Positions 16,909 through 57,900 of a DNA stretch of 64,000 nt are shown piece by piece. Location: contig CM106586.1 in the NCBI GenBank assembly GCA_048013815.1, positions 23,002,001 to 23,066,000 on the forward strand, read 5' to 3'. The first letter of the stretch is position 1. The number at the start of each line of letters is the position of its first letter. The notes below the pieces were generated by a model. It worked only from the letters and a program-made list of their open reading frames with translations, made no database searches and was not told where the DNA came from. The position numbers and the translations under genes are program-made. Origin of the DNA: Setoptus koraiensis. Taxonomy: Eukaryota; Animalia; Arthropoda.

Positions 16909-17691
16909 ATGGAACGCAAAATAAAACTGTCCACTCTCAATGAACACCTCAGTTGTGTTCTTTGTAAAGGATATCTGATTGAGGCCACAACCATAGTCGA
17001 ATGTTTGCATACATTCTGTAAGAGTTGCATTTATAAACATTTCATGAAGAAGAATATCACATGTCCAAAATGTAACAATATTGTTCATCAGAGTCATCCA
17101 CTAAATTACATTAGCTTTGATAGAACAATGCAGGATATTGTCTACAAATTGGTACCAAATTTAGAGGAAAAAGAAATAGCCAGAGAGAAGAGCTTCTATA
17201 AAAAGCGTGGACTGGCATACCCTAAAGAGCACCAGGCAGAAAACAATAACAATAATAGCACCTCATCAGCCAATAACAACAACAGTAACACTAATAACGG
17301 CAGCAGCAACAATAGTAGTAACAATAATAATACTAACAATAACAACAACAACAACTATAGTCGCAATCACGAACACCACGGATCAAACGCAACAAACTAT
17401 CACAGGATGGACGAGCAGATCAATCTTACTTTAGAACCTCATCATGCTTGTGATTTGAAAAATTTGAAAAAGAAGTATATCAGATGTTCTTGTCAGGCAA
17501 CCGTAACACACTTGAAGAAACTAATTGCTTTAAAATTGTACAATAATATGGACAAGCACAAAGAAGTTGACCTTCTATGCAATGATAACTTATTGGGCAA
17601 AGATCACACACTTAAATTTGTCAGCGTAACAGAATGGAGACACAGAGTTCCACCAATCAAGTTGTGTTACAGGCCCAGGGTCGACTATTGA
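16909..17691 (+). CDS. PCGF3: Polycomb group RING finger protein 3 (PCGF3 / l(3)73Ah type)
   Basis: C3HC4 RING (CVLC...[10 protein letters not shown]...CPKC), [24 protein letters not shown], and a RAWUL domain ([17 protein letters not shown]...[10 protein letters not shown]...YRP) typical of PCGF3/5. Intronless CDS. Confidence 0.92.
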
Positions 17692-23236: not shown

Positions 23237-26200
23237 ATTTGAGCCTGCATGTGGGTATGGGGCCCCATAGTTTGGGGCCAAGAGAGGAGGCCACAATGGC
23301 GAGCAGCAAGTTTGATTTGGTTCTTTTTGGGCAGGCACGAAATCAATATTGGTACCCACTAACTAGTAATAATGGCAAGATGGCAGACGAAGAAAATGAG
23401 TGCCAGCCCCTTTGAGTTATTGATACGGCAACGGTTGATGTAATACTATTTGGTTGCTGTTAGTTAATTCGTCCAATATTGACTAAATGAGCCATATTTA
23501 GTGCCTATAGGCGCCGCGAACATGTAGAGAAAGGGCGATGCGGGCCCATCTCTGGCAGTGGCGTGAGTGCGAATGCAGTTGCTAGAGAGCCGGCGGTAAC
23601 AGCAGCGCCAGGGCAACAACAGCAACGACAACAGCAACGACAACAGCAACGGCAACAACAACGGCAACAACAACGGCAACAACAACAATGGCCGACTGAC
23701 TGAGTGACTGGCAAAGAGAATAATAATAATTGAATAAGCAGAACTAACCATCGCAACTGCATTGCAACAACCTTATGAGTCGGATATAAATGTGCACTGT
23801 GCGATATTGACTCGTATAACGTTACGTCGTACGTGGTGCTCTATTGTGTGTCGTCGATGCATTTCGGCAGCATGGACGGTGCATTACGGACCCGATGAGA
23901 GCACCTAGCGCCTTGTTGTTGTTGCTGCTGTTGCTGTTGTTGCTTGTTACAGATGTTGTTGACGTCAAGGTAGCAGTTGATTCGCTGTTAGCTTGTTTGT
24001 CGTTCACTTGGGCCTCCGTGGCGTCGATGAAGATGCCAAGATGCCGATGCGTTCGACGTCAAGATGCCATGCGTTCGACGCCAAGACAACAAGTGCAACA
24101 GACAACGCCGACGACAAGTCAATCATTTCGTTTGCGCACCGACGAGTCGACTGTGAATTGTAAAGTTTGCCGCTTGAAACGACAATCGACTGTCGTTCTT
24201 TAATTGTATTTAATATAGCGGGCCGGTTGTGAGCTAGTTATTGCATCGCTTCGCATTTAAGTGTGGCCCAATCGCCAATCGCCAATCGCCAATTGCTGAT
24301 TGCCAATGGGGTAGCCGGCTCGACGGAGCCTGTCGAGCCGGCTACTGCTCGAGCCAGAAAATGATCCCATTAGAAGCGCACGGTTGTTATGTAACTTGTA
24401 GTTGCATGCTCATTGTTATATAATGCCACTTTCATTGTTTGCCCCAATGTTTGTCGTCTTCGCTGCTCATGCTCGTGGGTTCGACGCTGCTCAATCGACT
24501 GAACGCAACTAACCAACAAATTGATTATTGTTGTCGCCCTCAATTTCCCTGTGCCCATCAATAGGTCTCAGGTCATCTAATGAACAACGGGCGAGGCATT
24601 GAGTTTTTCATTGATGATCCCAGCGACAGCAACATAGTCAAATCAAATCTATTAAATGGAAATGTTCATGGGCCGGCCAACTCAGTAATTGGCGGCGCCG
24701 ACGCAGCCAAACTATCAGCAAATGGAGCAGATCAATTAAATCAGCTCTATATATTTGAGGGTCCCCTAGCGTACAAGTTTAAATTATACAAACTAGAGTT
24801 GCATGTTAGCAGCAGTGTTAATTCAATTTTAGACGGCCGCTCGCCCGTGGATAATTCGGCCCAAACGGCCAGCACTATTTATAATCACAAGAGCAGTTGC
24901 GAGCACACAATCAGCGGGGGCGCTTTCGACACATTTGTTGGCGAGTTACAATTACACTTTTACAATGTTCAATTGTATAATAGCTACGATGAGAGCGTCA
25001 ACAAACCGAACGCTTTTGCCGCCATCAGTGTGTTTGTCATGATGGACAATGTCGATAGGTCCGCCAACAAGCCATCACAGCAGCAATCAAGCAACGCCAC
25101 AAATAGAAATTATCACTCGCTCGATTTCATATATGACAATGTGAAAAACATCTCAAACAAGGGTAAGTTTTTGTTGTTTCAGGCAAACATTTCCATTGTT
25201 AATTTCAACTAAGTTGAGTTCAAGTTAGTCCAAAGCCAGAGCTAATTACATGTAAATTGTTTTTCTCACTGATTATAATTAACGCCGGCGATATTGGCAC
25301 AATCATTCAATGATCAACGCTCGAATTTGTTCGCAGGCTCCTTCGTGAGAGTGGCCGTAAACGGGGCCGATCTGTTGGAGTTGATAACCACCAAAGACCA
25401 ATATATCACTTATGACGGCTCACTGAATCGTCCACCTTGCAGTGAAAATATTAAATGGATTATTTTAAATAAGGCTCTGCACATGAGACACACTGACTAT
25501 AATGAGATGTTCACTAACATATTGGATGGTGTAGATAACATAAGGCCGACAAAGGCACTGAATAAGCGTCCATTACGTACCAGCATCAACTTTAATCAGC
25601 AATACCAACAACCAAGAAATTGTCGCCATCCATCAAATAGTGTAAGTAAGCGAGCAAAGATTTATTTTTCAACAATTCAATCCTTTTATAATTAGATTAA
25701 CAAGATTTATTTAAGTAATATTTAAGTAATATCATGTGTGTGAGCGAACAGCATACACAGTGTGTCGTATTAGCACTCGGATAGTGATGATTTAGGAATG
25801 ATTTGATGATGATGCCGGCCCGTTACATTGTATAAAGAATGGCTTGATAAATGATTGATAAAATGCTGTGTGCCTCTTGTTTCGTTTTCTTTTTCATTTA
25901 ATTCGGCCCCAAAGCGATCAAATGAAAAGCAGTGGCCGATAGGCGCCACTTGTGTTGTTGACGTTGTTTTTGTCACAATTTACACATCGATGATTCAGCG
26001 GACTGATGGCGACGCTGGTCATCACACACTCGTTGTTAGTTACCAGCACCAGTTATTGTTGGTGTTATTATTATTATTTACCCTATTGCGCAAGATATTC
26101 TATTACCCGGCAACTGTTTGTGTAGTATGTGTGTGTGTAGGACAACAATTGTATCGCCGAGAGAAGTTGTTGGGGATAAAGTCCTAATTGTGTGCCCATC

Positions 26201-30101: not shown

Positions 30102-30687
30102 ATGGCTGAATTTGTCGGAACATACACATTCAAGAAGGACGACGGAAAATTCGACGAATTTCTCAAGGCCTTAAGTGAGTTGTCTCTCTCTCTCTCTCTC
30201 TCCAACTGCCCAACTATCCACTTGACCATCTCGGCAGCACACTAACCAATCACTAACTCTCGTCCCGTCTGTCACACAATGTGCCAACACAATAACGTGC
30301 TTACATAATAACATGACGTAACGCAACGTCACATAACATAACCTCACGCAACGCAACCCAGATGTCAGCTTTGTCACCAGAAAGGTGGCCTCAAACGTGA
30401 CGCCCAAGGTGGAGATTTCGTACGCCGACGACGGAACCATCAGCTTCAAGACAGTGTCCACATTCAAGACACAAGAGTTGGTATTCAAACTAGGAGAGGA
30501 GATCGAAGAAAAAAGAATGGACGGTGTCACTTGTAAGACCGTGTTCACCAAAGACGGCAACAAGCTTATCCAAGAACAAAAAGGTGAGCCGCCTTGCACA
30601 ATCACTAGAGAATTTGTCGACGACAAGATGATTGCGACATGCAAATGCGACACTGTCACCACTGTACGTGAATACGCCAAAGTCTAA
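30102..30687 (+). CDS. FABP: Fatty acid-binding protein (mite group-13 allergen-like), 132 aa
   Basis: join(30102..30174,30362..30687), phase-1 GT-AG intron. MAEFVGTY...FDEFLKALNVSFVTRKVA...STFKTQELVFKLGEEIEEKRMDG...LIQEQKG...TREF...REY is a canonical FABP. Confidence 0.95.
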
Positions 30688-31681
30688 ACAACACCAACAA
30701 TCAATCAACAACAACAACAACAATAATCTTTGATAATCATAAGCCGCTTATGAATGCTCACGTGCTGGATAATTCTAGATAATACTGAATATTTTTATTA
30801 TTACCAATAAACGTTTAACTACAATAAACACACACACGTTACAATCTACCTGCAACCAGCCTGCCTGATTGCGCAATGTCGCTCACAATGTCAATCCTCA
30901 GTCGATGCCGGGCCATTTCGCCTAAATGTAATACCTAATGTAGATGAATTTATGCGTTGTTAAATTGTTCAATCATTTATGCAAATCATAATGCACTTTG
31001 CATTGTCACTTTAATTATGAAAGTTTCATATATGGTGACTACCACAGTGTGTGGGCGTGCCGAGCGCAAATTTTGTGCTTTGAAATTGGCGCCAAACACA
31101 TTCGGCGACCACTTTCGCCCCCGCCTCAGCGCGCCACCCCCGACACACATCTGCACCTCGCACAACCTCACAGCGGTAGAAACAATTTTCGCTCGCTGAT
31201 CGTGAATGTGTGGCTCAAAGCGTGTAAATGTGTTCACACATTGAACCGAATGTTGATGATGCGCATGCCACAGGCACACTGCACATTGCTGCTGCAGCAG
31301 CAGAACAAAGCCACTAGTGGGGGTAGCGTTTCTGCGGCCGTGGCGGTTAAACGAGCGTCGTCCCGGGGGACACGAACACTCAGAAACGGGGGAAGAGAAG
31401 TGGATGGCACAAACAAAGACTGTCCGCTGCCTTTCGCTGCCATCAACTGTATCGGATTGCTTGGGAGCGTCTCAACCTCAATATTATTATTACTATTATT
31501 ATTATATATCATATTATCATCTATTACTATTAGTATGCATCTGTAGACGACGATATCACCTTATCCGCATCACCATTAGCAACATATACCCAATATATTT
31601 TGCATGTATTGGTCGTCTTTGAGATAACCGTCGAGTGTGTTCGAATATACATTTGGACGCACATACTAAAACATATTCAAC

Positions 31682-32623
31682 ATGTCGGACCTTCCAAAAG
31701 ACTACAGCCTGTACGATGCTCACGACTACGGGAGTCCCTCGCCTCACAAATTGGTATCGCCGCCAAAGCCTGCCCCGAGAACGATGCCCAGGTCCATGAC
31801 ACATAAACGAGAGGGGAAGCTTCCTACGCGTTACAATGAGGAGGAATTGTCGCCTCAGCAATTCATGCCACAATCACCATTTCATTCATTTCAATCCTCT
31901 AAGCAACAGAACAATCAACAATTGACAACACAACAGCAGCAGCAACAGCAACAACAAAACAACAATAGCAGCATCATCAACAACCAGCACCCATTCAATG
32001 TACTTGTCGGTCACCAATACAAACCCTGCCGATCTGTGCAGCCTTCCACTAGTGAACTCAGGAGGGATCATCCGCATAGATTTAGCGACAACTGTCATCC
32101 ATTGTCGCAACCTGACCCTAAAGATCAGGAAAGGTTCATGGAGAAGGTTGTGGCAAAATTGCAAGCACTTAAAAATGACAGTGCCTCCAATACCTCGAAA
32201 CACAATTTTGACATGCCCAGCTGCCAGGCCGAAAGAGGTCACGACGTTTTAGACAAGCATTTTAATAATCATTTTACTACAAACCATAGATCATCTCGAA
32301 GCCTGAAAAAGAGTAGAAACGAGCCTTTTGGCCGACACAATCCTATCAAGGCTCATTGTACCTATGTAGAGTTTGATGGTGCCAAGAAGACAGAAATCAC
32401 TAAGTATCTAATTAAGCCAAGATCAAATACGTTACATGACCTTAAAAGAGAGTTGCCCACAATATCTGAAGGCAGTAAATTATACTTCAAGAACCAAGAC
32501 AATATACTAGAGCAGGCAGACAATGAGGAACAACAACTTCACACCTTTAAAGACAAGGATGGATCCGATATTATCATGTGCGAAATAGTAGTCCCCAGGA
32601 CAAATGTTCCAAGATTGAATTAA
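31682..32623 (+). CDS. Axn: Divergent, shortened Axin-like protein (GSK3-binding helix, beta-catenin-binding motif, C-terminal DIX domain; no RGS domain)
   Basis: DQERFMEKVVAKLQALK aligns with the Axin GSK3 helix (EPQKFAEELIHRLEAVQ). HDVLDKHF aligns with the beta-catenin motif (ESILDEHV). The C-terminus (TLHDLKRELP...KLYFKN...ILEQADNEEQQLHTF...IIMCEIV) fits a DIX domain. The motif order is that of Axin. Reference sequences are from memory. Confidence 0.72.
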   Translation: MSDLPKDYSLYDAHDYGSPSPHKLVSPPKPAPRTMPRSMTHKREGKLPTRYNEEELSPQQFMPQSPFHSFQSSKQQNNQQLTTQQQQQQQQQNNNSSIINNQHPFNVLVGHQYKPCRSVQPSTSELRRDHPHRFSDNCHPLSQPDPKDQERFMEKVVAKLQALKNDSASNTSKHNFDMPSCQAERGHDVLDKHFNNHFTTNHRSSRSLKKSRNEPFGRHNPIKAHCTYVEFDGAKKTEITKYLIKPRSNTLHDLKRELPTISEGSKLYFKNQDNILEQADNEEQQLHTFKDKDGSDIIMCEIVVPRTNVPRLN

Positions 32624-32860
32624 ATAAATTCATGAATTCAATCATGGATACGTAACTAAGAACTTCCAAATCCAGGAGAATAACTTGCTGTGTGATGTCT
32701 GAGTGCACCAGTTTCTCGCAATTTATCCTATAATTTTCAAACAGATCAACAGCCTTGCTTACCGTTTGTGTTGTTTTAAAACTTTTTATTACTATTCAAC
32801 AGAGAGGCTCTTTTTTCGCAAAAAAAGCAAATATTACAGCTCAGTTTCGTTTGAAGGTTC

Positions 32861-34240
32861 TTACCTCCGGGCACATGCTTGTTTAATCAAGTCGTTGAAC
32901 TCGGCGTATTTATCAGCATAGACATGATGACCAGATCCGTTTATTATATGCACTGATACCCGATCATTCCCAAGTATATCTTGGATATACTGTCCGGGTT
33001 GACGATCTATCCACGATCTCGAACCATAGATGAATGTTAGTCGAACTCCAGAATCTAAATCTTCAAGTCTATGAACTAGAGGGTACTTTGGCCAACCAAA
33101 GGGAATGGCAAGAGACTTGAAAGCAGACTCTCCTGTTGCAGTTTGAGCGTTACAATGGTATATATAAGTAAGAAAGTCGCTGCAATCATCTTTCAGTTTC
33201 GGGGAAAACTTTTCTTTTAAGTCTGATCTGAAATGCTGTACTAATTTAGGACCATAAGGTCCAGTTGCTCTTAACGCAGCCAGAGGGTTGAACGCCTGAA
33301 AGACTGTGTTCACCATTTTTACCCATCTGGGCAATTTGTAAGTGTTATGTGTTGATTTATGACGATCTTGAACACCCCAGGGGTCAGCTAAAATGACATG
33401 TGATACTCTTTGTGGGTGGCGCAGTGCGTAGGACGCGCTTAAGTAACCACCGAATGAATGTCCAAGTAATATAAATTTGTCTATCTCCATCGCAGATCTC
33501 CAACGTTCTATACTATCAACAAACTGTCCCTCAACATCATTGCTCAAATCAAACGGTGCTCTTGTTGAACGTCCAAATCCAAGAATATCAAAGGCATATA
33601 CTTTACGATCTAGCGTTGTGGCAAAGTCATCTAAATTTAAAATCCATCCACCAATACCTGACGCAAAGCCATGAATGCAAACTAGCGGGTAATTCATCTC
33701 TTTTGTGTCGTAAGACTGCTCGTCTGACGCATTCAGCATTTCGATTGTTCTAATTTTATTGTTCTCCAACCCCCACCCTGGTCCTATATCAACAAATTTC
33801 GTTAAGAACGGCTGAGTGAGAACTGATCGAGAATTAAAAAAATTGGTGAAAAGGTGTTCAAATTCAATCAGATATCAATCGAGGACGAATATCAAGTGGA
33901 AAGGTACAGTGAGTGCTAGATGAAGTTTGGTGCACTAACCTGATAAGAGCTTTTGCTCTGATTCAGCTAATTCTTCTAATGATGTTGGACACCATCTCAA
34001 TGATGTAGCCATGACAGACCTCACTTTCGAGAAAACATTACTGATCGGATGTGAGATTAATTGTTGTTGCGCAACTGAGGCTGTTGAACTTCCATCGATG
34101 TCCTCATTGCTGGATGGATGGCACGGTTTGGTTGGCTGCTGCGGTGGCCCTGAAGATATTCCGCAAGATGGTAGGTTGACCGATGGAATAGAATCAATCC
34201 CGGATTTACTAGAACCATTTGATAATCCTGAGGTTGTCAT
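32861..34240 (-). CDS. ABHD4: Alpha/beta hydrolase ABHD4/ABHD5 family (lyso-NAPE lipase type), about 420 aa
   Basis: complement(join(32861..33822,33940..34240)). Motifs LVCIHGFASG, FDILGFGRS, nucleophile GHSFGG (Ser present, so ABHD4-like), ILADPWG, GHHVYAD. Confidence 0.9.
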
Positions 34241-35286: not shown

Positions 35287-37101
35287 ATGGCATCAAGTTT
35301 TGTATCATTCAACAATATGACCAGGCCATCAATTCTGAATAAGATAATGTTCAGCAGTATAGCTTTCAAGCCTGCAAATAATAACACTACGACCAATAAC
35401 AACAATATTAATACTAACGGCAACAGCATTATTAATAATAATAGTAATAATAACAATAATAATAATAATAATAATGAAATCAACAATCACGATGGTAGTA
35501 ATAATCATACCAATCATCACAGTCAATCAGCAGGAGAGAGAGAAATCAACATCGAACCCAAAAATAGATTGTGTGATCCCGATATAGTAATATTAAATTG
35601 GCAACATTCAGAACGTGTTGGAAGCGGTTTGGTCAATGTTGGAAACACATGCTTTCTTAACTCAGTTCTACAATGTCTTACTTATTGCCCGCCATTAGTA
35701 AACTTTTTAATCAATACAAATGGGGGCCATTCAAGCGGATGCAAGATATCAGATTTCTGTATGCTATGCGAAATGGAACGTCACATTAAGCGCATTAGAT
35801 CATCCACCGGATACCCGGTAAAGCCAATTTATATATATCAAAGGCTTAAGTACATTAGTAAGAGCTTTCAATTCGGCCGACAAGAAGACGCACATGAGTT
35901 CCTACGCTATCTTATTGACCACATGTGGAAAGCTTGCCTTATAAATAATAATGTCAATGGTTTAAAATTGGACGCTAGAATTAAAGAGACTACTGTGATC
36001 AACCATATATTCGGTGGTTACCATAGAAGTCAGGTAGTTTGTTTGACATGCAAATCAAAAAGTAATACCTTTGACTTTTTTATGGACTTCATTTTGGACA
36101 TCAGAAATGCACCATCATTGGAGAAGGCCCTTGAGAAGTTTACTCAACCCGAGACTCTTCAAAATGACAATGCTTACAAGTGTAGTAAATGTAAGAAAAA
36201 GGTTGCAGCTAAAAAGAGATTCACAGTGCATCGTGCACCCAACGTAGCAACCTTTCAATTCAAAAGATTTGATTCCAACCGAATATTCGGCGGTAAAATT
36301 ACTAAACACATTACCTACCCCGAAGAACTCGATCTCAGACCCTATATGTCTGACACTACAAAACCCTCCATCAAATATAATCTGAATGCAGTACTAGTTC
36401 ATGTCGGGCAGACATCAAATTCTGGTCATTACTACTGCTTCATTCGAAACTCTAATGGTTTCTGGTACAGAATGGACGACGCAAGCGTTACTCAAGTGTC
36501 GAAAGACGTTGTTTTGGGACAGCAAGCTTATGTACTATTCTATACAAGAAAGAGCGACTCGAAAACTTCAGCGACCATCAATATCGCTAAAACCGCCAGC
36601 AACACAGCCACTAATGTCACCACCCCTAAGTCCATTACTATTCAATCTGATCAGGTGTCAACTGCACCAATAACCAACGGCCATAAGGTTAGCCCACTCC
36701 CTCAGACAAACGGGCACAAACAAACCGCATTCCCTCAAACATCTAACAGCTCTTTAGATAAGCCCGCATTGAATGGCTACAAGAGTCAAGTTACCACCTG
36801 GTCAGGTGATCGAAGCCAATTAGACTCTGTTAGCGCAATCAACAAACGAAAAAGTGACGACATATCAGATCGGGATGAGTTCAATGAAGAACTCGATAGA
36901 GGAAAGATCAAAAAGATTAAGTCTCACAATCGTGATGAGCGATTCTTCTCCCAGTCAAAGTACAACCCATTTCAACGTTACACCAATAACGGTTATCGAC
37001 ACAATTCTAACCACCATGGTCATAACCGACACATCCGTCATAGAAATCACAAACGCGATAACCATTATAAGGGGAAGAATCGTCACTTTGGAAAACGATG
37101 A
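35287..37101 (+). CDS. USP36: Ubiquitin-specific protease USP36/USP42 (scrawny) family
   Basis: Cys box GLVNVGNTCFLNSVLQCL, RQEDAHEFLRYL, zinc-finger CxxC pairs, His box LVHVGQTSNSGHYYC, MDDASV, and a basic C-terminus. Intronless. Confidence 0.92.
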   Translation: MASSFVSFNNMTRPSILNKIMFSSIAFKPANNNTTTNNNNINTNGNSIINNNSNNNNNNNNNNEINNHDGSNNHTNHHSQSAGEREINIEPKNRLCDPDIVILNWQHSERVGSGLVNVGNTCFLNSVLQCLTYCPPLVNFLINTNGGHSSGCKISDFCMLCEMERHIKRIRSSTGYPVKPIYIYQRLKYISKSFQFGRQEDAHEFLRYLIDHMWKACLINNNVNGLKLDARIKETTVINHIFGGYHRSQVVCLTCKSKSNTFDFFMDFILDIRNAPSLEKALEKFTQPETLQNDNAYKCSKCKKKVAAKKRFTVHRAPNVATFQFKRFDSNRIFGGKITKHITYPEELDLRPYMSDTTKPSIKYNLNAVLVHVGQTSNSGHYYCFIRNSNGFWYRMDDASVTQVSKDVVLGQQAYVLFYTRKSDSKTSATINIAKTASNTATNVTTPKSITIQSDQVSTAPITNGHKVSPLPQTNGHKQTAFPQTSNSSLDKPALNGYKSQVTTWSGDRSQLDSVSAINKRKSDDISDRDEFNEELDRGKIKKIKSHNRDERFFSQSKYNPFQRYTNNGYRHNSNHHGHNRHIRHRNHKRDNHYKGKNRHFGKR

Positions 37102-37163: not shown

Positions 37164-38216
37164 TTAACGTTTCTTTCCGTAAAGGCTATCCAAAGCTAAG
37201 CCGAGGAAGACGAGCGAAGTACCGATCCATTGGATTGAATTGAGTGAATTGCCAAAGAACATGACTGAGGCCAGAACTGTAAAAAACTTTCTCGTGGTAG
37301 TTATGATTGAACATGGCAGTGGTCCAAATTCAGATACTGTAAGAAATATGAAAAGCTGTGAAAAAAAAGATAATCAATGAATTAATTCAAGAATGTTGGT
37401 TAATACATCCCGGTTAGCACTATAATGTAAATTAAAAGGAAAACGGCCAGCACTCACCTGTCCTACTGCGCTCAATGTCGCGAACAATGTTATGTCATTG
37501 ACCATGTTGGGGTATCGGTGGACAAAGTCTAAGAATTTTGGTAATTCACCAGTTATAATTGTTGCTGCTAATAGGTAGAATGTAGACCACAAATTGATTT
37601 TGTACATCATGAAGACCGACTTTGTCTGGTGTTCCGTTTTCATTCGCTCTTGCACAGCTCCAGTCAGTCCATCCATTGTAAGTGAAACGAGCAGAAGAAT
37701 CTCCCCGAAGCCCAACAACGACATGATACTAGAAGCGCTATAGTTGGATGACGTTTCTCCTCCCTTTCCCCCTTTCCACATAAATAAAGCAACTCCCAGT
37801 ACAATTAGAGATACGAATAGGTATTTGAGTTTCGGGTATCTTTTGCCGCCTATTATTACCCCAAGAGACATTATTGGAATGGGCTTGCAGGACTTGCCAA
37901 CAACTTGGGTGGGATAGCTTACATGTTGTAAAGCCATGTTACTAGAGACCATTGCGGAAAGATATGTGAGAGAGCAGATCGCGTAATAGATGGATCTAGT
38001 GGAGTCGACACCTTGTTTCATGAATGTCAATAGCATCGATTTTGAGAAGACGGCGTTAACTATACATTGAATTAGGACTAATGTCATTGTGCAATTGAAC
38101 ATTTCGTTCTGGGGTCCATATTTGGTCCTAGTGATCTTTTCCTGCAATATTCCAAAATAGAAATAGCAAGAGAATATGCCCGCTGCATAGAAGAATAATT
38201 TGGACTTTGCAGGCAT
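37164..38216 (-). CDS. SLC35B1: Solute carrier family 35 member B1 (UAA transporter family, meigo), 316 aa
   Basis: complement(join(37164..37355,37458..38216)). Motifs [45 protein letters not shown]; the last exon supplies GQ|[31 protein letters not shown]...KKR*. Confidence 0.93.
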
Positions 38217-38635: not shown

Positions 38636-39649
38636 ATGTCAAGTACTAATTGGATCTACGATAAAGAAGAATTAAAGAGGACACCATCAATAACGAACAC
38701 TGCACTCACTTACGATGCAGAACAGCGTATTAGATTGGAGGGAGCAAAATTTATTTTGGATATAGGAGCCAAAAAATTATCTCTTCATCATGACACCGTT
38801 GCCACAGCAATTGTTTATTTCCATCGTTTTTACATGTACCATTCATTTGTACATTTTCCAGTGTATCTAACGGCGTCTTGTTGCTTATTTTTGGCAGGTA
38901 AAGTTGAAGAGACACCGAAAAAGTCTCATGATATTATTAAGGTAGCGAGAGAGGTTCTGACTGAACAACAATTTGCACAATTTAAAGGAGAGAACGCCAA
39001 GGAAGAATTATTAACATTAGAAAGGATATTACTGCAAACAATTAGATTTGACTTACAAGTAGACCACCCATATGGTTATCTTATGAAATATGTTCAATCA
39101 ATGAAAGCAGACAGGGATAAATTAAGAGGTCTACTGCAAGCAGCTTGGACGTTCATAAATGACTCATATTGTACAACAATCTGTTTACAGTTTGAACCTG
39201 AAATCATAGCCATAGCTATGATGTTTCTCGCTAGTAAAATTAACAAAATTGATCTACTAGATTGGGACAAACGAACAACAAAACACGAAAATTGGTGGGA
39301 TGTCTATGTTGAAAATGTGGATAAAGAGATGCTCGAAAGCATTTGTCACCAAGTTTTAGATGTATACTCATGTTCACAAGATTCCTCAACATCGCCCGTG
39401 TCAACTCCGCCCAATCAAAATGCCCAGCCTCAAATAACTATGGTGGCTCCACCACCACCTCCACCACCCCTGCCCTCAAATGCACAAATGGTTCCGGCGC
39501 CGCCAGCTGTGCCGCCGCATCTGGTTGGTATTCCAATGATGCCACCTCCGCCGTTACATGGAGCTATTTTGGGAGCTAATATACCGCTACCGCCACCGCC
39601 AGTGCCGATGCCCTTGTCGATGCCTTTACCCAGATCTGTAGAGAAATAA
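38636..39649 (+). CDS. CCNK: Cyclin K
   Basis: WIYDKEELKRTPS, VATAIVYFHRFYMYHSF, CLFLAGKVEETPKK, LERILLQTIRFDLQVDHPY, AWTFINDS, WWDVYVE, and a Pro-rich C-terminal tail. Confidence 0.95.
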   Translation: MSSTNWIYDKEELKRTPSITNTALTYDAEQRIRLEGAKFILDIGAKKLSLHHDTVATAIVYFHRFYMYHSFVHFPVYLTASCCLFLAGKVEETPKKSHDIIKVAREVLTEQQFAQFKGENAKEELLTLERILLQTIRFDLQVDHPYGYLMKYVQSMKADRDKLRGLLQAAWTFINDSYCTTICLQFEPEIIAIAMMFLASKINKIDLLDWDKRTTKHENWWDVYVENVDKEMLESICHQVLDVYSCSQDSSTSPVSTPPNQNAQPQITMVAPPPPPPPLPSNAQMVPAPPAVPPHLVGIPMMPPPPLHGAILGANIPLPPPPVPMPLSMPLPRSVEK

Positions 39650-49064: not shown

Positions 49065-49658
49065 CTAGACAACCCGATCCAGAGGCCTATTAAATCCACC
49101 CTTTCTATTCATATATTGTCTATATCTTCTCTTCTGAGCGACATGGACAGCCGACACGTTGTTTCCCTCGACATGTTTGCCTTTAGTGCTATCGAAGTCG
49201 GCAAAGCCCATAATTTTTCTCATAAGTTCTGCTTCATCATCCGGAGGCGTAGGAATCTGGCTTAAGTCATCAGGAGGCGGTGGTTTGATATCATCAATGT
49301 CCAAATTTTTTGTCATTCTATTTCTGTCTAAAGTCGCTTGGACATCGTCTTTGTGCCTGCTTCTGCTTCGGCTTCTACTTCTGCTTCGACCACGATTTCG
49401 TTCCCGATCCCTTTCTCGACCTCTTTCCCGATCCCGATCCCTGTCTCTATCTCTGGGCCTATCTCTATCTCTATTTTTTGGCCTATCACTATGTCTATCT
49501 CTTGGGCGATCCCTATCACGGATTCTGTCTCTGTCTCTTTCTTTTTCTCGATCCCTATCTCTATCTCTGACCCTTTCTCTGTCCCGATCCCTAACCCGAT
49601 CTATATCTCTGTCCTTGCCTCTATCCCTCATCCGATCCCTTTCGCGTTCATTGGGCAT
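49065..49658 (-). CDS. SNRNP27: U4/U6.U5 small nuclear ribonucleoprotein 27 kDa protein
   Basis: RD/RS-rich N-terminus and the conserved C-terminus [17 protein letters not shown]...[19 protein letters not shown]. An upstream exon cannot be excluded. Confidence 0.93.
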
Positions 49659-50018
49659 AGCGCTTGATGAAAAAGGTAAAAGTATGAGACAAGTCCGATG
49701 GGTGGGATGGTTTAAAAATAACTACAGTGCAATTCGAAGACGAAGAATTAACACGCTTCGAATGTTTTCAATGGACGTCCGGATTGAGATCCTGGTCGAT
49801 TATAAGTGGGCAGTCGAAAAATAAATCCAGTTTACTGTTGGGTGAAAAACAGTGGCAGAGGAGACAATATAATATGGCTAGTAAAATAAATAATATGCTC
49901 TGAGGTTCTCATCAGAGGTGACATGAGGTAACGTGAATGACCATCTGATTAGAATTTCAATCCAAAACAAACGATCAGCGCCAACTTGTACAGGGTGAAA
50001 CATTAACTTAGGGTTGCA

Positions 50019-50518
50019 NNNNNNNNNNNNNNNNNNNNNNNNNNNNNNNNNNNNNNNNNNNNNNNNNNNNNNNNNNNNNNNNNNNNNNNNNNNNNNNNNN
50101 NNNNNNNNNNNNNNNNNNNNNNNNNNNNNNNNNNNNNNNNNNNNNNNNNNNNNNNNNNNNNNNNNNNNNNNNNNNNNNNNNNNNNNNNNNNNNNNNNNNN
50201 NNNNNNNNNNNNNNNNNNNNNNNNNNNNNNNNNNNNNNNNNNNNNNNNNNNNNNNNNNNNNNNNNNNNNNNNNNNNNNNNNNNNNNNNNNNNNNNNNNNN
50301 NNNNNNNNNNNNNNNNNNNNNNNNNNNNNNNNNNNNNNNNNNNNNNNNNNNNNNNNNNNNNNNNNNNNNNNNNNNNNNNNNNNNNNNNNNNNNNNNNNNN
50401 NNNNNNNNNNNNNNNNNNNNNNNNNNNNNNNNNNNNNNNNNNNNNNNNNNNNNNNNNNNNNNNNNNNNNNNNNNNNNNNNNNNNNNNNNNNNNNNNNNNN
50501 NNNNNNNNNNNNNNNNNN
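50019..50518. other. Assembly (scaffold) gap, 500 N
   Basis: Run of N. Confidence 1.
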
Positions 50519-53500
50519 AAGCGTGGTAGCACACAATTATTATTTTTATTTAGTTATTGTGTGCATATTGGTACACATAGTTACAAGAAAATTTTGTTAT
50601 AATTTGAAATGCTTTCGAGATGAGACTTTTATTTAAACTTGACCGCTGATTCGGCTCACTCAACCTTCTTCATTAGGATCTATAGAAAACTTTCAAGGTT
50701 GGAAACTGATGCCACCATATATCGTGTTGTGTTGACCATTGACTCAGTTACGTGCCGGCATCACCTATGTATAATATTTCAGGCATTTCTTAAGGCTACT
50801 ACTAACAAAAGCTAGTAGTAGTATATGTATATATATATATACTTAGTCGAGATTTGAAACTAATATTGAGATTCATTATTAACAGGGTTATTATTTCATA
50901 AAAATGCATCTCTCTCTTGGAAAATCTCTAGTTGCAGTTTTTACATTAGAATCATAAAAATAGTGACCTGCTCAGATTACTGTCGTTGTACTCAACCATT
51001 GATACAATCATGGTTCATGTATGAATCTATCATCTATTACCTGGTTGACTCAGATAACCAGGTTTCATTTTGTTGCTCATTGGTTTCCCATACGGCCAAA
51101 TATTCCTAGACTAGACAACAACAACATCAACACCAACAACAACAACAGTAACAACCAACTTCACCCACAATCAATGAATGAAATATGATTCCCAGGACAC
51201 ACAATGTGTTTTGTTGTGTAAGAGTAGAGTTGTTTGTCGATTAGTAGCTTTAAGCTCCTCGGATTTAATAGATGAATTATGTGACATAATAATAATAATA
51301 ATATTATATTTTATATATATCTGTTTAAATTTCACTGCACTGCCACATTTTCGTGAGTGTCTAATGAGTTGATCCGCATAAGTCGTACTATTGTTATTAT
51401 TATTGTATTGAGTTACAGGTTACAAAGAAAAATGATGGGACACATGTTAGAGTGGTTGGAATAGAAAGAAATAAGAACAAAAAGATGTTGTAAAGTTATC
51501 ATGATCATCATCATAGTTATTCCTCTACTTACTATTGTCATTGTTATCTTGCAAATGTTTTGCAACTCTCATTCTAGCATCTGGTACATCAAAGTTCAAT
51601 CCTAATCTAAGTAGTGTGTTATTTTTCTCGACCAACTTTGCTATATCCATCTCAATTCGATTACCTAGAATTTGTGGCCTTTGATTACTTGCTCTTAGCT
51701 CTAATACTTTTTGTTTCTCTAAAAGTGCATCAATCAATGTTCTTATCATTACTCCGGATAAGAAGTTTGAATCTAGATTGATGATCTTTAAAGTTGTATT
51801 CTGTTTTATTGCATCAACCAGCTTGGAAATTGGACCATCGGTCAGACCAACGTTACAAAGACTTATTGTTTTGAGGTTTGTGTTAGTTTTAAGACCTTCA
51901 AATATCTTCTTAAATGTATCTCTTGTTATGTGTTTTATATTGTTTAAATTTACTTCTGTTAATTCTGCATCATTTTTTGCTATTAGCTCTGCCGTCTTTA
52001 TAGGATCTGTTGTATTGTCTGGTTCTATCTTAGATGGTTTTAAGGGTGTAGATTTGACTATAGATTCAAATTTATCTCCTGGACGTTGGGATTTATTTGT
52101 TATTGACGCATAATATTGATCTTGATTCAACATTGAATGTAAACCTAAAATACCGGCCAAATCAACCAAATCAGATTCGGTGGCAGTATTTAATGCTTTA
52201 GAGCTGTCATCATCTAAATCAAGCATTAATGGTATCTCATCGCTAGGATGACTTGGCACTACTTTTGGTGTAAACACCTTGCCCAATTTTACTCCTGATA
52301 CATATCGTTTATTTTCAGGCCAGTCTTGTTGCTCCATGGCATATTTAGCCAAATAATGTATGAGCTTTCTTCTATTTAAAGGTCCCGTAGGATCTTTAGA
52401 AGTTTGATTTTTACATCTTTGTGATGGAGGTAATAATGTGTCATCTGGGTCCACTTCATTACTCAATTGTTCAAGTTCCTCAGGTGACAATTTGGCTAAA
52501 ATTTCGTCAACAGGTATGTTATCATATTCTCTAAGATCTTTTCCATACAGCATATAAATGCCTTGAGGTTGTTGTGTAGGAGGAGTTGTTGGTTCTGTGA
52601 TAGGGGGTTGTTTAATTTGAGAAGATGTCTTATTGTTGACATTGTTAGTAGTACGGATTACATGGTTGTCCTGTTCTGGTGACGATTCATCTCGTCTGTT
52701 ATCGATCACCCTGGTACTTTTGGTGACCTGTTTGTTAGAAGTTCGCACAGTGGTGGACGATGATGATGATGACGACGATGTTGTGAATTTAGATTCATGG
52801 TGGTTTGCCGTTTGAGAGGAAAATGCCGAGAGCATTTGATGGTGTTATATGGATTGATACAAATAATAGATTTTATGAAAAAATTCAATAAACAAATTAA
52901 ATTTTCAGGGAAGAGAATTCAATATTAAAAATGAATTAATGCTTTGTGTTGATTGCATGTCAAGCGATAAACTCATCTAATATAGTCTTCTATTTCGTTG
53001 TTGTTGTTGTTGTTAGCTAACCTTTGTGTATTCGATCTCGTACTCATCATAGGCGTCGTCGTCACTCATGTTGATGCCAAAATCTATTTATCGAAGCTTG
53101 TTTATTGTAGAATGTGGTTAAGCTAAAAATGACGGGATGTAAGGCAAAGATATTGTATGAGAGATAGGGAATATGTTTGAGATGAGAATTCAGATTTTCT
53201 TCGTATCACACAAGACGCATTTTGAAATGATGAAGTCGAGGGAATGATACGGAGGCTTAATCGATTAGATAAGCGAATAGATGCTTGACATTATGCGCTG
53301 GGTTCGATAAGATCGGAGAGTTCAACATGAGCGTGGATAGATCATCCGCTATGGATAATTGAAGCCAGACATTGGCTGGACCCGATGTATTACCTTTGAC
53401 GATGTCAAAGCCTTCTCGGCTCGGGATCGTTGCTTGGGCTTGTTGTGTTATCGAAGCGTTGTTGGAGCGGTATAATATAGTTGTGCCGCAGTAAAGATGC

Positions 53501-54993: not shown

Positions 54994-57900
54994 AGGAGGG
55001 GACGGAATTTTTATAATCAACACTACGCGTTATATCAATACAACAACAACAATCACGATAGATAGCGACTATTAATACTAATACTATCACCATTTTTATC
55101 ATTAATAGTCTATCATCATTAGCGGATATTATCTCTCCCTCTTCCTACTGCGACAACTGACTGCATCAGCAACAATACTACCGTAATATTAACAGCTCCA
55201 ATACACCAACACAAGCGCAAGCAGCGATCCCCGAGCCGAGAAGGCTTTGACATCGTCAAAGGTAATACATCGGGTCCAGCCAATGTCTGGCTTCAATTAT
55301 CCATAGCGGATGATCTATCCACGCTCATGTTGAACTCTCCGATCTTATCGAACCCAGCGCATAATGTCAAGCATCTATTCGCTTATCTAATCGATTAAGC
55401 CTCCGCATCATTCCCTCCACTACACACCATCTCAAAATGCGTCTTGTGCGTGATACGACGAAAATCTAAACATATTCCCTATCTCTCATACATTATCTTT
55501 GCCTTGCATCCCGTCATTTTTAGCTTAACCACATTCTACAATAAACAAGCTTCGATAAATAGATTTTGGCATCAACATGAGTGACGACGACGCCTATGAT
55601 GAGTACGAGATCGAATACACAAAGGTTAGCTAACAACAACAACAACAACGAAATAGAAGACTATATTAGATGAGTTTATCGCTTGACATGCAATCAACAC
55701 AAAGCATTAATTCATTTTTAATATTGAATTCTCTTCCCTGAAAATTTAATTTGTTTATTGAATTTTTTCATAAAATCTATTATTTGTATCAATCCATATA
55801 ACACCATCAAATGCTCTCGGCATTTTCCTCTCAAACGGCAAACCACCATGAATCTAAATTCACAACATCGTCGTCATCATCATCATCGTCCACCACTGTG
55901 CGAACTTCTAACAAACAGGTCACCAAAAGTACCAGGGTGATCGATAACAGACGAGATGAATCGTCACCAGAACAGGACAACCATGTAATCCGTACTACTA
56001 ACAATGTCAACAATAAGACATCTTCTCAAATTAAACAACCCCCTATCACAGAACCAACAACTCCTCCTACACAACAACCTCAAGGCATTTATATGCTGTA
56101 TGGAAAAGATCTTAGAGAATATGATAACATACCTGTTGACGAAATTTTAGCCAAATTGTCACCTGAGGAACTTGAACAATTGAGTAATGAAGTGGACCCA
56201 GATGACACATTATTACCTCCATCACAAAGATGTAAAAATCAAACTTCTAAAGATCCTACGGGACCTTTAAATAGAAGAAAGCTCATACATTATTTGGCTA
56301 AATATGCCATGGAGCAACAAGACTGGCCTGAAAATAAACGATATGTATCAGGAGTAAAATTGGGCAAGGTGTTTACACCAAAAGTAGTGCCAAGTCATCC
56401 TAGCGATGAGATACCATTAATGCTTGATTTAGATGATGACAGCTCTAAAGCATTAAATACTGCCACCGAATCTGATTTGGTTGATTTGGCCGGTATTTTA
56501 GGTTTACATTCAATGTTGAATCAAGATCAATATTATGCGTCAATAACAAATAAATCCCAACGTCCAGGAGATAAATTTGAATCTATAGTCAAATCTACAC
56601 CCTTAAAACCATCTAAGATAGAACCAGACAATACAACAGATCCTATAAAGACGGCAGAGCTAATAGCAAAAAATGATGCAGAATTAACAGAAGTAAATTT
56701 AAACAATATAAAACACATAACAAGAGATACATTTAAGAAGATATTTGAAGGTCTTAAAACTAACACAAACCTCAAAACAATAAGTCTTTGTAACGTTGGT
56801 CTGACCGATGGTCCAATTTCCAAGCTGGTTGATGCAATAAAACAGAATACAACTTTAAAGATCATCAATCTAGATTCAAACTTCTTATCCGGAGTAATGA
56901 TAAGAACATTGATTGATGCACTTTTAGAGAAACAAAAAGTATTAGAGCTAAGAGCAAGTAATCAAAGGCCACAAATTCTAGGTAATCGAATTGAGATGGA
57001 TATAGCAAAGTTGGTCGAGAAAAATAACACACTACTTAGATTAGGATTGAACTTTGATGTACCAGATGCTAGAATGAGAGTTGCAAAACATTTGCAAGAT
57101 AACAATGACAATAGTAAGTAGAGGAATAACTATGATGATGATCATGATAACTTTACAACATCTTTTTGTTCTTATTTCTTTCTATTCCAACCACTCTAAC
57201 ATGTGTCCCATCATTTTTCTTTGTAACCTGTAACTCAATACAATAATAATAACAATAGTACGACTTATGCGGATCAACTCATTAGACACTCACGAAAATG
57301 TGGCAGTGCAGTGAAATTTAAACAGATATATATAAAATATAATATTATTATTATTATTATGTCACATAATTCATCTATTAAATCCGAGGAGCTTAAAGCT
57401 ACTAATCGACAAACAACTCTACTCTTACACAACAAAACACATTGTGTGTCCTGGGAATCATATTTCATTCATTGATTGTGGGTGAAGTTGGTTGTTACTG
57501 TTGTTGTTGTTGGTGTTGATGTTGTTGTTGTCTAGTCTAGGAATATTTGGCCGTATGGGAAACCAATGAGCAACTTATTGAAACCTGGTTATCTGAGTCA
57601 ACCAGGTAATAGATGATAGATTCATACATGAACCATGATTGTATCAATGGTTGAGTACAACGGCAGTAATCTGAGCAGGTCACTATTTTTATGATTCTAA
57701 TGTAAAAACTGCAACTAGAGATTTTCCAAGAGAGAGATGCATTTTTATGAAATAATAACCCTGTTAATAATGAATCTCAATATTAGTTTCAAATCTCGAC
57801 TAAGTATATATACATATACATATACTACTACTAGCTTTTGTTAGTAGTAGCCTTAAGAAATGCCTGAAATATTATACATAGGTGATGCCGGCACGTAACT

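Follow-up and report, generated by a model that had tools for sequence, protein, structure and literature searches.

In Wnt/beta-catenin signalling, the rate-limiting scaffold is Axin. The contact of its RGS domain with APC and its tankyrase-controlled turnover are regarded as core features of the protein and as drug targets, the tankyrase-binding motif being of the R-x-x-[PGAVSC]-[DE]-G type. In human Axin, roughly 300 aa lie between the beta-catenin motif and the C-terminal DIX domain.

The beta-catenin site and the DIX domain are the two Axin parts found to be essential in SW480 cells and in flies (PMC5221518). Pronobis et al. (2017) and Schaefer et al. (2020) engineered minimal Axins (Axin-betacat-DIX, AxinDeltaRGS and "Start After RGS"). 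In these studies, the RGS-less constructs still formed puncta (PMC5221518, PMC7346726), and the minimal Axins attained full activity only when fused covalently to fragments of APC. The PRY-1 and AXL-1 proteins of C. elegans keep the RGS and DIX domains and lack recognisable sites for GSK3 or beta-catenin, and AXL-1 works without APR-1/APC binding (PMC6956378). In a non-exhaustive search of the literature, we encountered no naturally occurring animal Axin devoid of the RGS domain.

Here, we describe a gene from a 64,000-nt stretch of the Setoptus koraiensis genome (hereafter, the window), the product of which is probably a very divergent, shortened Axin-derived scaffold without an RGS domain. 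As in Drosophila Axin, AXIN1 and AXIN2, a DIX/DAX domain is predicted at the C-terminus, a GSK3-type helix lies upstream of it, a candidate beta-catenin-type motif is placed between the two, and long stretches predicted to be disordered link these elements. Unlike Axin, the mite protein comprises 313 aa, as opposed to about 750-860 aa, lacks the N-terminal tankyrase-binding motif, and escapes the Pfam DIX and Axin_b-cat_bind models; without an RGS domain, it also has no groove for the SAMP repeats of APC. It resembles PRY-1/AXL-1 in that these, too, are fast-evolving proteins of a small animal lineage, barely recognised by standard comparisons. Yet, with respect to domain content it is rather their mirror image, as it retains GSK3-like and beta-catenin-like sites together with DIX and lacks RGS. 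The engineered minimal Axins agree with it in domain content in all essentials; unlike these laboratory deletions, the mite protein is encoded by a natural gene under purifying selection and carries conserved N-terminal motifs of its own.

Other DIX proteins share fewer features with the mite protein. Ccd1/Dixin (DIXDC1) also has a C-terminal DIX domain, which compares to the mite domain with a similar structural score (Z of 9.2), but the mite protein possesses neither a calponin-homology domain (Pfam) nor a coiled coil (AlphaFold2, AF2). Dishevelled has the DIX fold as well (Z of 9.4-9.7 for Dvl2); in contrast to Dishevelled, the DIX domain of the mite protein is C-terminal, and no PDZ or DEP match and no further folded domain were detected.

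Gene structure, expression and selection

The features of the gene, in coordinates of the window, are as follows:

31617..31681, + strand: 5' leader, from a genome-collinear X1 contig, with in-frame stops at 31625 and 31667
31682..32623, + strand: coding sequence of the Axin-like protein, an intronless ORF of 313 aa with an ATG start, stop codon included
31682..32125, + strand: N-terminal half (residues 1-148), predicted to be disordered (AF2)
31682-31906, + strand: strongly conserved linear motifs (residues 1-75)
Residues 76-104, + strand: Q/N-rich tract within the disordered half
32126..32173, + strand: predicted amphipathic helix resembling the GSK3-interaction domain of Axin (residues 149-164, core FMEKVVAKLQAL, AF2)
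32246..32263, + strand: VLDKHF, a core resembling the beta-catenin-binding motif and containing both of its critical residues, Leu and His (residues 189-194)
32345..32593, + strand: predicted DIX-type (DAX) ubiquitin-like domain (residues 222-304, AF2 model)
32623..32628, + strand: AATAAA, a putative polyadenylation-signal-like hexamer read from the sequence and overlapping the stop codon

The first-pass annotation of this DNA had reported an intronless 313-aa ORF at 31682-32623(+), preceded by an in-frame TAA at 31667 with no AG between this stop and the ATG, and a gene for a fatty acid-binding protein (FABP) ending about 1 kb upstream. We found the ORF as described, and the TAA and the lack of an AG are both seen in the window sequence. 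Additional in-frame stops are located 5' of the ATG at 31625, 31577 and 31544, and the FABP stop codon (30685-30687) lies 995 nt from the ORF.

Transcript contigs of run X1 (Logan contigs) span the ORF region at 31617-31795 and 32285-32569, at a depth of about one third of that over FABP. All seven coding differences between the ORF and these contigs are synonymous and fall on the third codon position. The FABP gene contains one canonical GT-AG intron (30175-30361), whereas a spliced 614-nt X1 contig skips 30172-30361; as the FABP contig of X1 lacks the intron, we consider the run to be RNA-derived. Three raw RNA-seq runs (X11, X14 and X16) gave zero reads on the stretch, the mite being probably absent from these runs. 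The X1 contig at 31617-31795 shows no joint and matches the genome collinearly over the 65 nt 5' of the ATG, including the stop at 31625, while the TAA of the window at 31667 reads TAC in X1. Since the transcribed leader carries in-frame stops, an upstream coding exon, and with it an upstream RGS exon, is unlikely, based on this one low-depth contig.

The coding sequence is subject to purifying selection. When the 313-aa protein was compared with its orthologue on contig L001 (see below), dN/dS amounted to 0.10 at a dS of about 1.1 (Nei-Gojobori), and no segment exceeded 0.22: residues 1-75 gave 0.06, the Q-rich tract 0.21 and the C-terminal domain 0.057. The DNA 5' of the ATG is, in turn, divergent between the window and L001 and contains indels of lengths not divisible by three; the alignment becomes clean from about 13 nt before the ATG. 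Taken together with the transcripts, we conclude that this ORF of an eriophyoid (gall) mite is a real, expressed and constrained gene.

A separate observation concerns a TTGCATGTA-containing block, which is conserved amid the diverged non-coding DNA (31600-31612 in the window and about 60-75 in L001). It is positioned around 75 nt 5' of the ATG and may represent a core-promoter or start-site element.

Gene neighbourhood

Pfam matches allowed us to assign the following genes of the window:

16909-17691, + strand: RING+RAWUL (PCGF-like) protein, single-exon
24580-25212, + strand: carbonic-anhydrase piece, single-exon
30103-30687, + strand: FABP/lipocalin gene, the upstream neighbour (Lipocalin, 6.8e-10)
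32861-33769, - strand: alpha/beta-hydrolase, the downstream neighbour
35287-37101, + strand: USP/UCH deubiquitinase, single-exon
37374-38216, - strand: UAA nucleotide-sugar transporter, single-exon
38636-39649, + strand: cyclin, single-exon

Within the FABP gene, a (CT)n tract is present just inside the 5' end of the intron. Further downstream, the six-frame scan revealed an inverted pair of 436-aa ORFs at 51525-52835 (-) and 55811-57121 (+), with identical peptides and equal scores. At 49065-50536, overlapping ORFs of 170-220 aa occur on both strands and in several frames, an arrangement indicative of biased composition or of repetition.

Relatives and sequence searches

The known family consists of three members, namely the window protein and two relatives, both coming from Logan assemblies. 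P0001 (333 aa) is encoded on contig L001 and is 73-80% identical to the window protein; the hydrolase gene of L001 occupies the same convergent position beside the P0001 gene as in the window. P0002 (269 aa) is a distant homologue, 46% identical in the C-terminal domain, and was found by exhaustive profile search. In all three species, the ORF is thus uninterrupted (313, 333 and 269 aa), and each of the three proteins starts at an ATG shortly 3' of an in-frame stop. A further candidate, P0003, was rejected as a repeat artefact.

Beyond these relatives, sequence comparisons returned nothing of relevance. The exhaustive profile search of 1.84 billion protein representatives yielded P0001 and P0002 only and no canonical DIX protein, and word-index protein searches at the 5.8-billion scale likewise gave only these two. 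Pfam, queried with the whole protein and four sub-fragments, produced no relevant match at E<=10, including DIX (PF00778) and Axin_b-cat_bind (PF08833). Searches of the PDB with phmmer (whole protein and middle region) and with a three-sequence DIX profile gave chance matches only. For the relative that encodes P0001, the exhaustive profile search, which used the DIX domain, showed no further DIX protein. By exact look-up, the window protein is absent from the public gene-position collection. No sequence-based method therefore links the window protein to Axin or DIX. The language-model feature search independently put clusters with both DIX and Axin_b-cat_bind closest to the protein, at a score of 0.81 that serves as a lead only.

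Predicted DIX domain at the C-terminus

In the AF2 model, residues 222-304 adopt a beta-beta-alpha-beta-beta-beta arrangement at a pLDDT of 85-91, obtained from an input of only two or three aligned sequences. Foldseek comparison of this model with the PDB placed the DIX domains of Dvl2, Axin, Ccd1 and Dvl1 at the first eight positions and at most of the top 25 (E of about 1e-3, probability 1.0). In a second look with VIA, the top 10 matches were all DIX, with Z of 8.4-9.7 and an rmsd of about 2 A over 70-78 of about 80 residues, at 15-29% identity; these were followed by SOSEKI, which is DIX-like (8.3), PB1 (7-7.6) and ordinary ubiquitin-like domains (6-7). A VIA search conducted independently of Foldseek against 48,161 representative PDB chains ranked the DIX domains of Dvl2, Ccd1 and Axin first to third (Z of 9.4, 9.2 and 8.9, respectively), with SOSEKI next, then PB1 (around 7) and ubiquitin-like proteins (around 6). 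The fold search of the ESM Atlas returned a DIX-only nematode cluster at the top, and the Axin-1 cluster was also among its first matches. In the structural alignments, identity to the DIX domain of Dvl2 was 26-29%, as compared to 19-21% for that of Axin.

For a ubiquitin-like fold, a structural Z of 9-10 is good, albeit not overwhelming. We regard it as very probable that residues 222-304 form a DIX fold, for which polymerisation is predicted. The DIX-like C-terminus proposed in the first-pass annotation is hence upheld by its position and by the predicted fold, but not by Pfam. The same annotation had named the want of a DIX hit as evidence against its reading; such a hit is indeed missing at the level of sequence (Pfam), and the assignment to DIX derives from predicted structure and from language-model features.

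Candidate GSK3 and beta-catenin sites

The only helix predicted outside the DIX domain is the 16-residue helix at residues 149-164 (AF2), and this is where a GSK3-binding-type helix had been placed from the sequence. F152, V156, L160 and L163 occupy positions i, i+4, i+8 and i+11 and form one hydrophobic face. As a reference, we used the human Axin peptide 383-VEPQKFAEELIHRLEAV-399 as printed in PMC8786283, with ungapped BLOSUM62 scoring, and compared with it the pattern F-x-E-x-[LV]-[IV]-x-[RK]-L-[EQ]-A-[VL] of the mite helix. The best match of this peptide falls exactly on the helix (KDQERFMEKVVAKLQAL), with a score of 29, the second-best being 15; in P0001, the score reaches 32. Equal scores were attained by 43-62 of 20,000 shuffles (about 0.2-0.3%), or by 27-62 of 20,000 across the window protein and P0001, and the match outranks every other six-frame piece of the 64-kb window. 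In P0002, the same peptide scoring detected no match. The helix resembles the GSK3-docking helix of Axin and is a candidate GSK3 site.

The L-D-x-H motif of the first-pass annotation was recovered in its place between the helix and the DIX domain, as VLDKHF. It precedes the DIX domain by about 28 aa. Leu and His, both of which VLDKHF contains, are critical in bilaterian Axin and are required in the beta-catenin motif of Drosophila Axin (PMC13455636). Our reference in this case was an engineered Axin-derived binder, YPEDILDKHLQRVIL (PMC10882002), which matches best at residues 185-199 with a score of 24, reached by 345 of 20,000 shuffles, a value to be read in the light of a short motif and an engineered reference. 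The top-scoring place of YPEDILDKHLQRVIL is the homologous site also in P0001 (VLDNHF) and P0002 (LLERHF), neither match being significant alone. Hence, the pattern [VL]L[DE]xHF is kept throughout the three-member family. With three sequences, the placement of the middle region of P0002 by MAFFT is ambiguous, and we preferred the local BLASTP match LLERHFN/VLDKHFN, the best segment obtained when the N-terminal part of P0002 was aligned with that of the window protein. Judged by its sequence, VLDKHF appears to be a beta-catenin-motif-like element, the likeness being at the level of a motif.

N-terminal half and the missing RGS domain

No secondary structure is predicted for residues 1-148 in the full-length AF2 model (pLDDT of 37-53). 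There is no Pfam match to RGS in the protein and no RGS fold in these residues, and the R-x-x-[PGAVSC]-[DE]-G regular expression finds no tankyrase-binding motif in the window protein, P0001 or P0002. Pfam, AF2 and the regular expression thus agree with the earlier statement that the ORF has neither element. The gap upstream of the ORF (30688-31681), where no RGS-like exon had been noticed before, contains no RGS-like ORF: of its three long plus-frame ORFs, none has a Pfam match. P0001 and P0002 are likewise without RGS and have the same start, which indicates that the RGS-less state characterises the family as such instead of arising from faulty annotation. Altogether, it is very likely that the RGS domain is absent from the protein.

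Residues 1-75 are predicted to be disordered, yet they are as constrained as the DIX domain. Their P-x-K-L-x-S-P-P and G-K-L-P-x-R-Y-x-E-E-E-L-S-P motifs are partly kept in P0002.

Discussion

The order and content of the predicted parts, i.e., a GSK3 helix, a beta-catenin motif and a C-terminal DIX domain, are those of Axin and not of Dishevelled or Ccd1, and for this reason we read the protein as Axin-derived. We assign a probability of about 0.6 to a very divergent, shortened Axin-derived scaffold without RGS. With regard to the "miniature Axin" that had been proposed for this locus, the Axin-like architecture in Axin order and the absence of RGS and of the tankyrase motif hold, but a sequence-level DIX match is missing and the beta-catenin site amounts to a short-motif match.

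Other explanations differ from this one in role, in descent or in denying the gene a function. The protein could be an RGS-less paralogue that exists beside another, perhaps more complete Axin and acts as a modulator instead of the main destruction scaffold; it might, e.g., buffer GSK3 or beta-catenin, or cap or seed the polymers formed by the DIX domains of Axin and Dishevelled. In identity, such a paralogue overlaps with the scaffold favoured here, and it is the role that differs. In flies, AxinDeltaRGS recruits Slimb/betaTrCP poorly (PMC7346726), so that destruction may be scaffolded only weakly by an Axin without RGS, and this speaks for a modulator. The profile search, in which the P0001 relative showed no further DIX protein, points the other way, and the constraint over the full length, including the GSK3 and beta-catenin motifs, fits a complete scaffold just as well. 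We consider the paralogue role unlikely. The case for a lineage-specific DIX adaptor not descended from Axin, comparable to Ccd1/Dixin or the DIX-only proteins of nematodes, draws on the undetectable sequence homology with Axin, the DIX domain being slightly nearer to Dvl2 than to Axin in structural alignments, the DIX-only nematode cluster as the top ESM Atlas match, and the GSK3 helix not being recognisable in P0002. Such an adaptor would tune Dishevelled/Axin polymers only, and the likeness of its helix and LDxH motif to those of Axin would be fortuitous. However, two independent short motifs stand in the right order and spacing 5' of a C-terminal DIX domain, with shuffle fractions of about 0.003 and 0.017, and each match is the best place in the 64-kb window. 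Moreover, even the distant P0002 retains the core of the beta-catenin motif, the domains that accompany DIX in Ccd1 are missing, and the nearest language-model clusters are Axin-type, all of which renders this descent distinctly improbable.

That the ORF is non-functional, either a reading frame open by chance or the remnant of a decaying Axin gene, might be suspected from the lack of database annotation and of any Pfam domain, and from one third of the protein being low-complexity or disordered. Such an origin is hardly credible, as it is effectively refuted by a dN/dS of 0.10 at a dS of about 1.1 and is also at odds with the ORF being intact in three species, the exclusively synonymous differences from X1, the transcript contigs and the confident C-terminal fold.

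If the protein is indeed an Axin-derived scaffold, its DIX domain would polymerise head-to-tail and could co-polymerise with the DIX domain of Dishevelled, while the helix would dock GSK3 and the motif would dock Armadillo/beta-catenin. Kinase and substrate would thereby be concentrated for the phosphorylation of beta-catenin, as by Axin, and the DIX domain of Dishevelled would interfere with the polymers. The RGS-SAMP contact with APC and tankyrase-driven turnover could not operate on such a protein. Any contact with APC would have to involve another surface, possibly the region near the GSK3 site or the conserved N-terminal linear motifs; in flies, the Arm repeats of APC make a second contact near the GSK3 site of Axin (PMC5221518). 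We infer that these changes may constitute a rewired Wnt pathway, as the first-pass annotation had supposed. A more far-reaching and tentative proposal, possible though on balance doubtful, is that the protein is the sole Axin of eriophyoid mites. The destruction complex would then be assembled on a 313-residue scaffold without the RGS-SAMP link or tankyrase control, and the conserved N-terminus (dN/dS of 0.06) would provide a new contact with APC, an E3 ligase or the receptor complex.

The mite protein would be the counterpart in nature of a "minimal Axin", so far made by engineering only. A constrained gene that keeps the beta-catenin site, the DIX domain and the GSK3 helix would represent an evolutionary test of the essential-parts idea, and its conserved N-terminal motifs would become candidates for an alternative contact with APC or an E3 ligase. 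Should it turn out to be the sole Axin, nature itself would have proved the engineered "minimal destruction machine" sufficient for animal development. For genome-reduced mites, the case also indicates that pathway components may be missed by HMM-based annotation and recovered only by comparison at the level of the fold.
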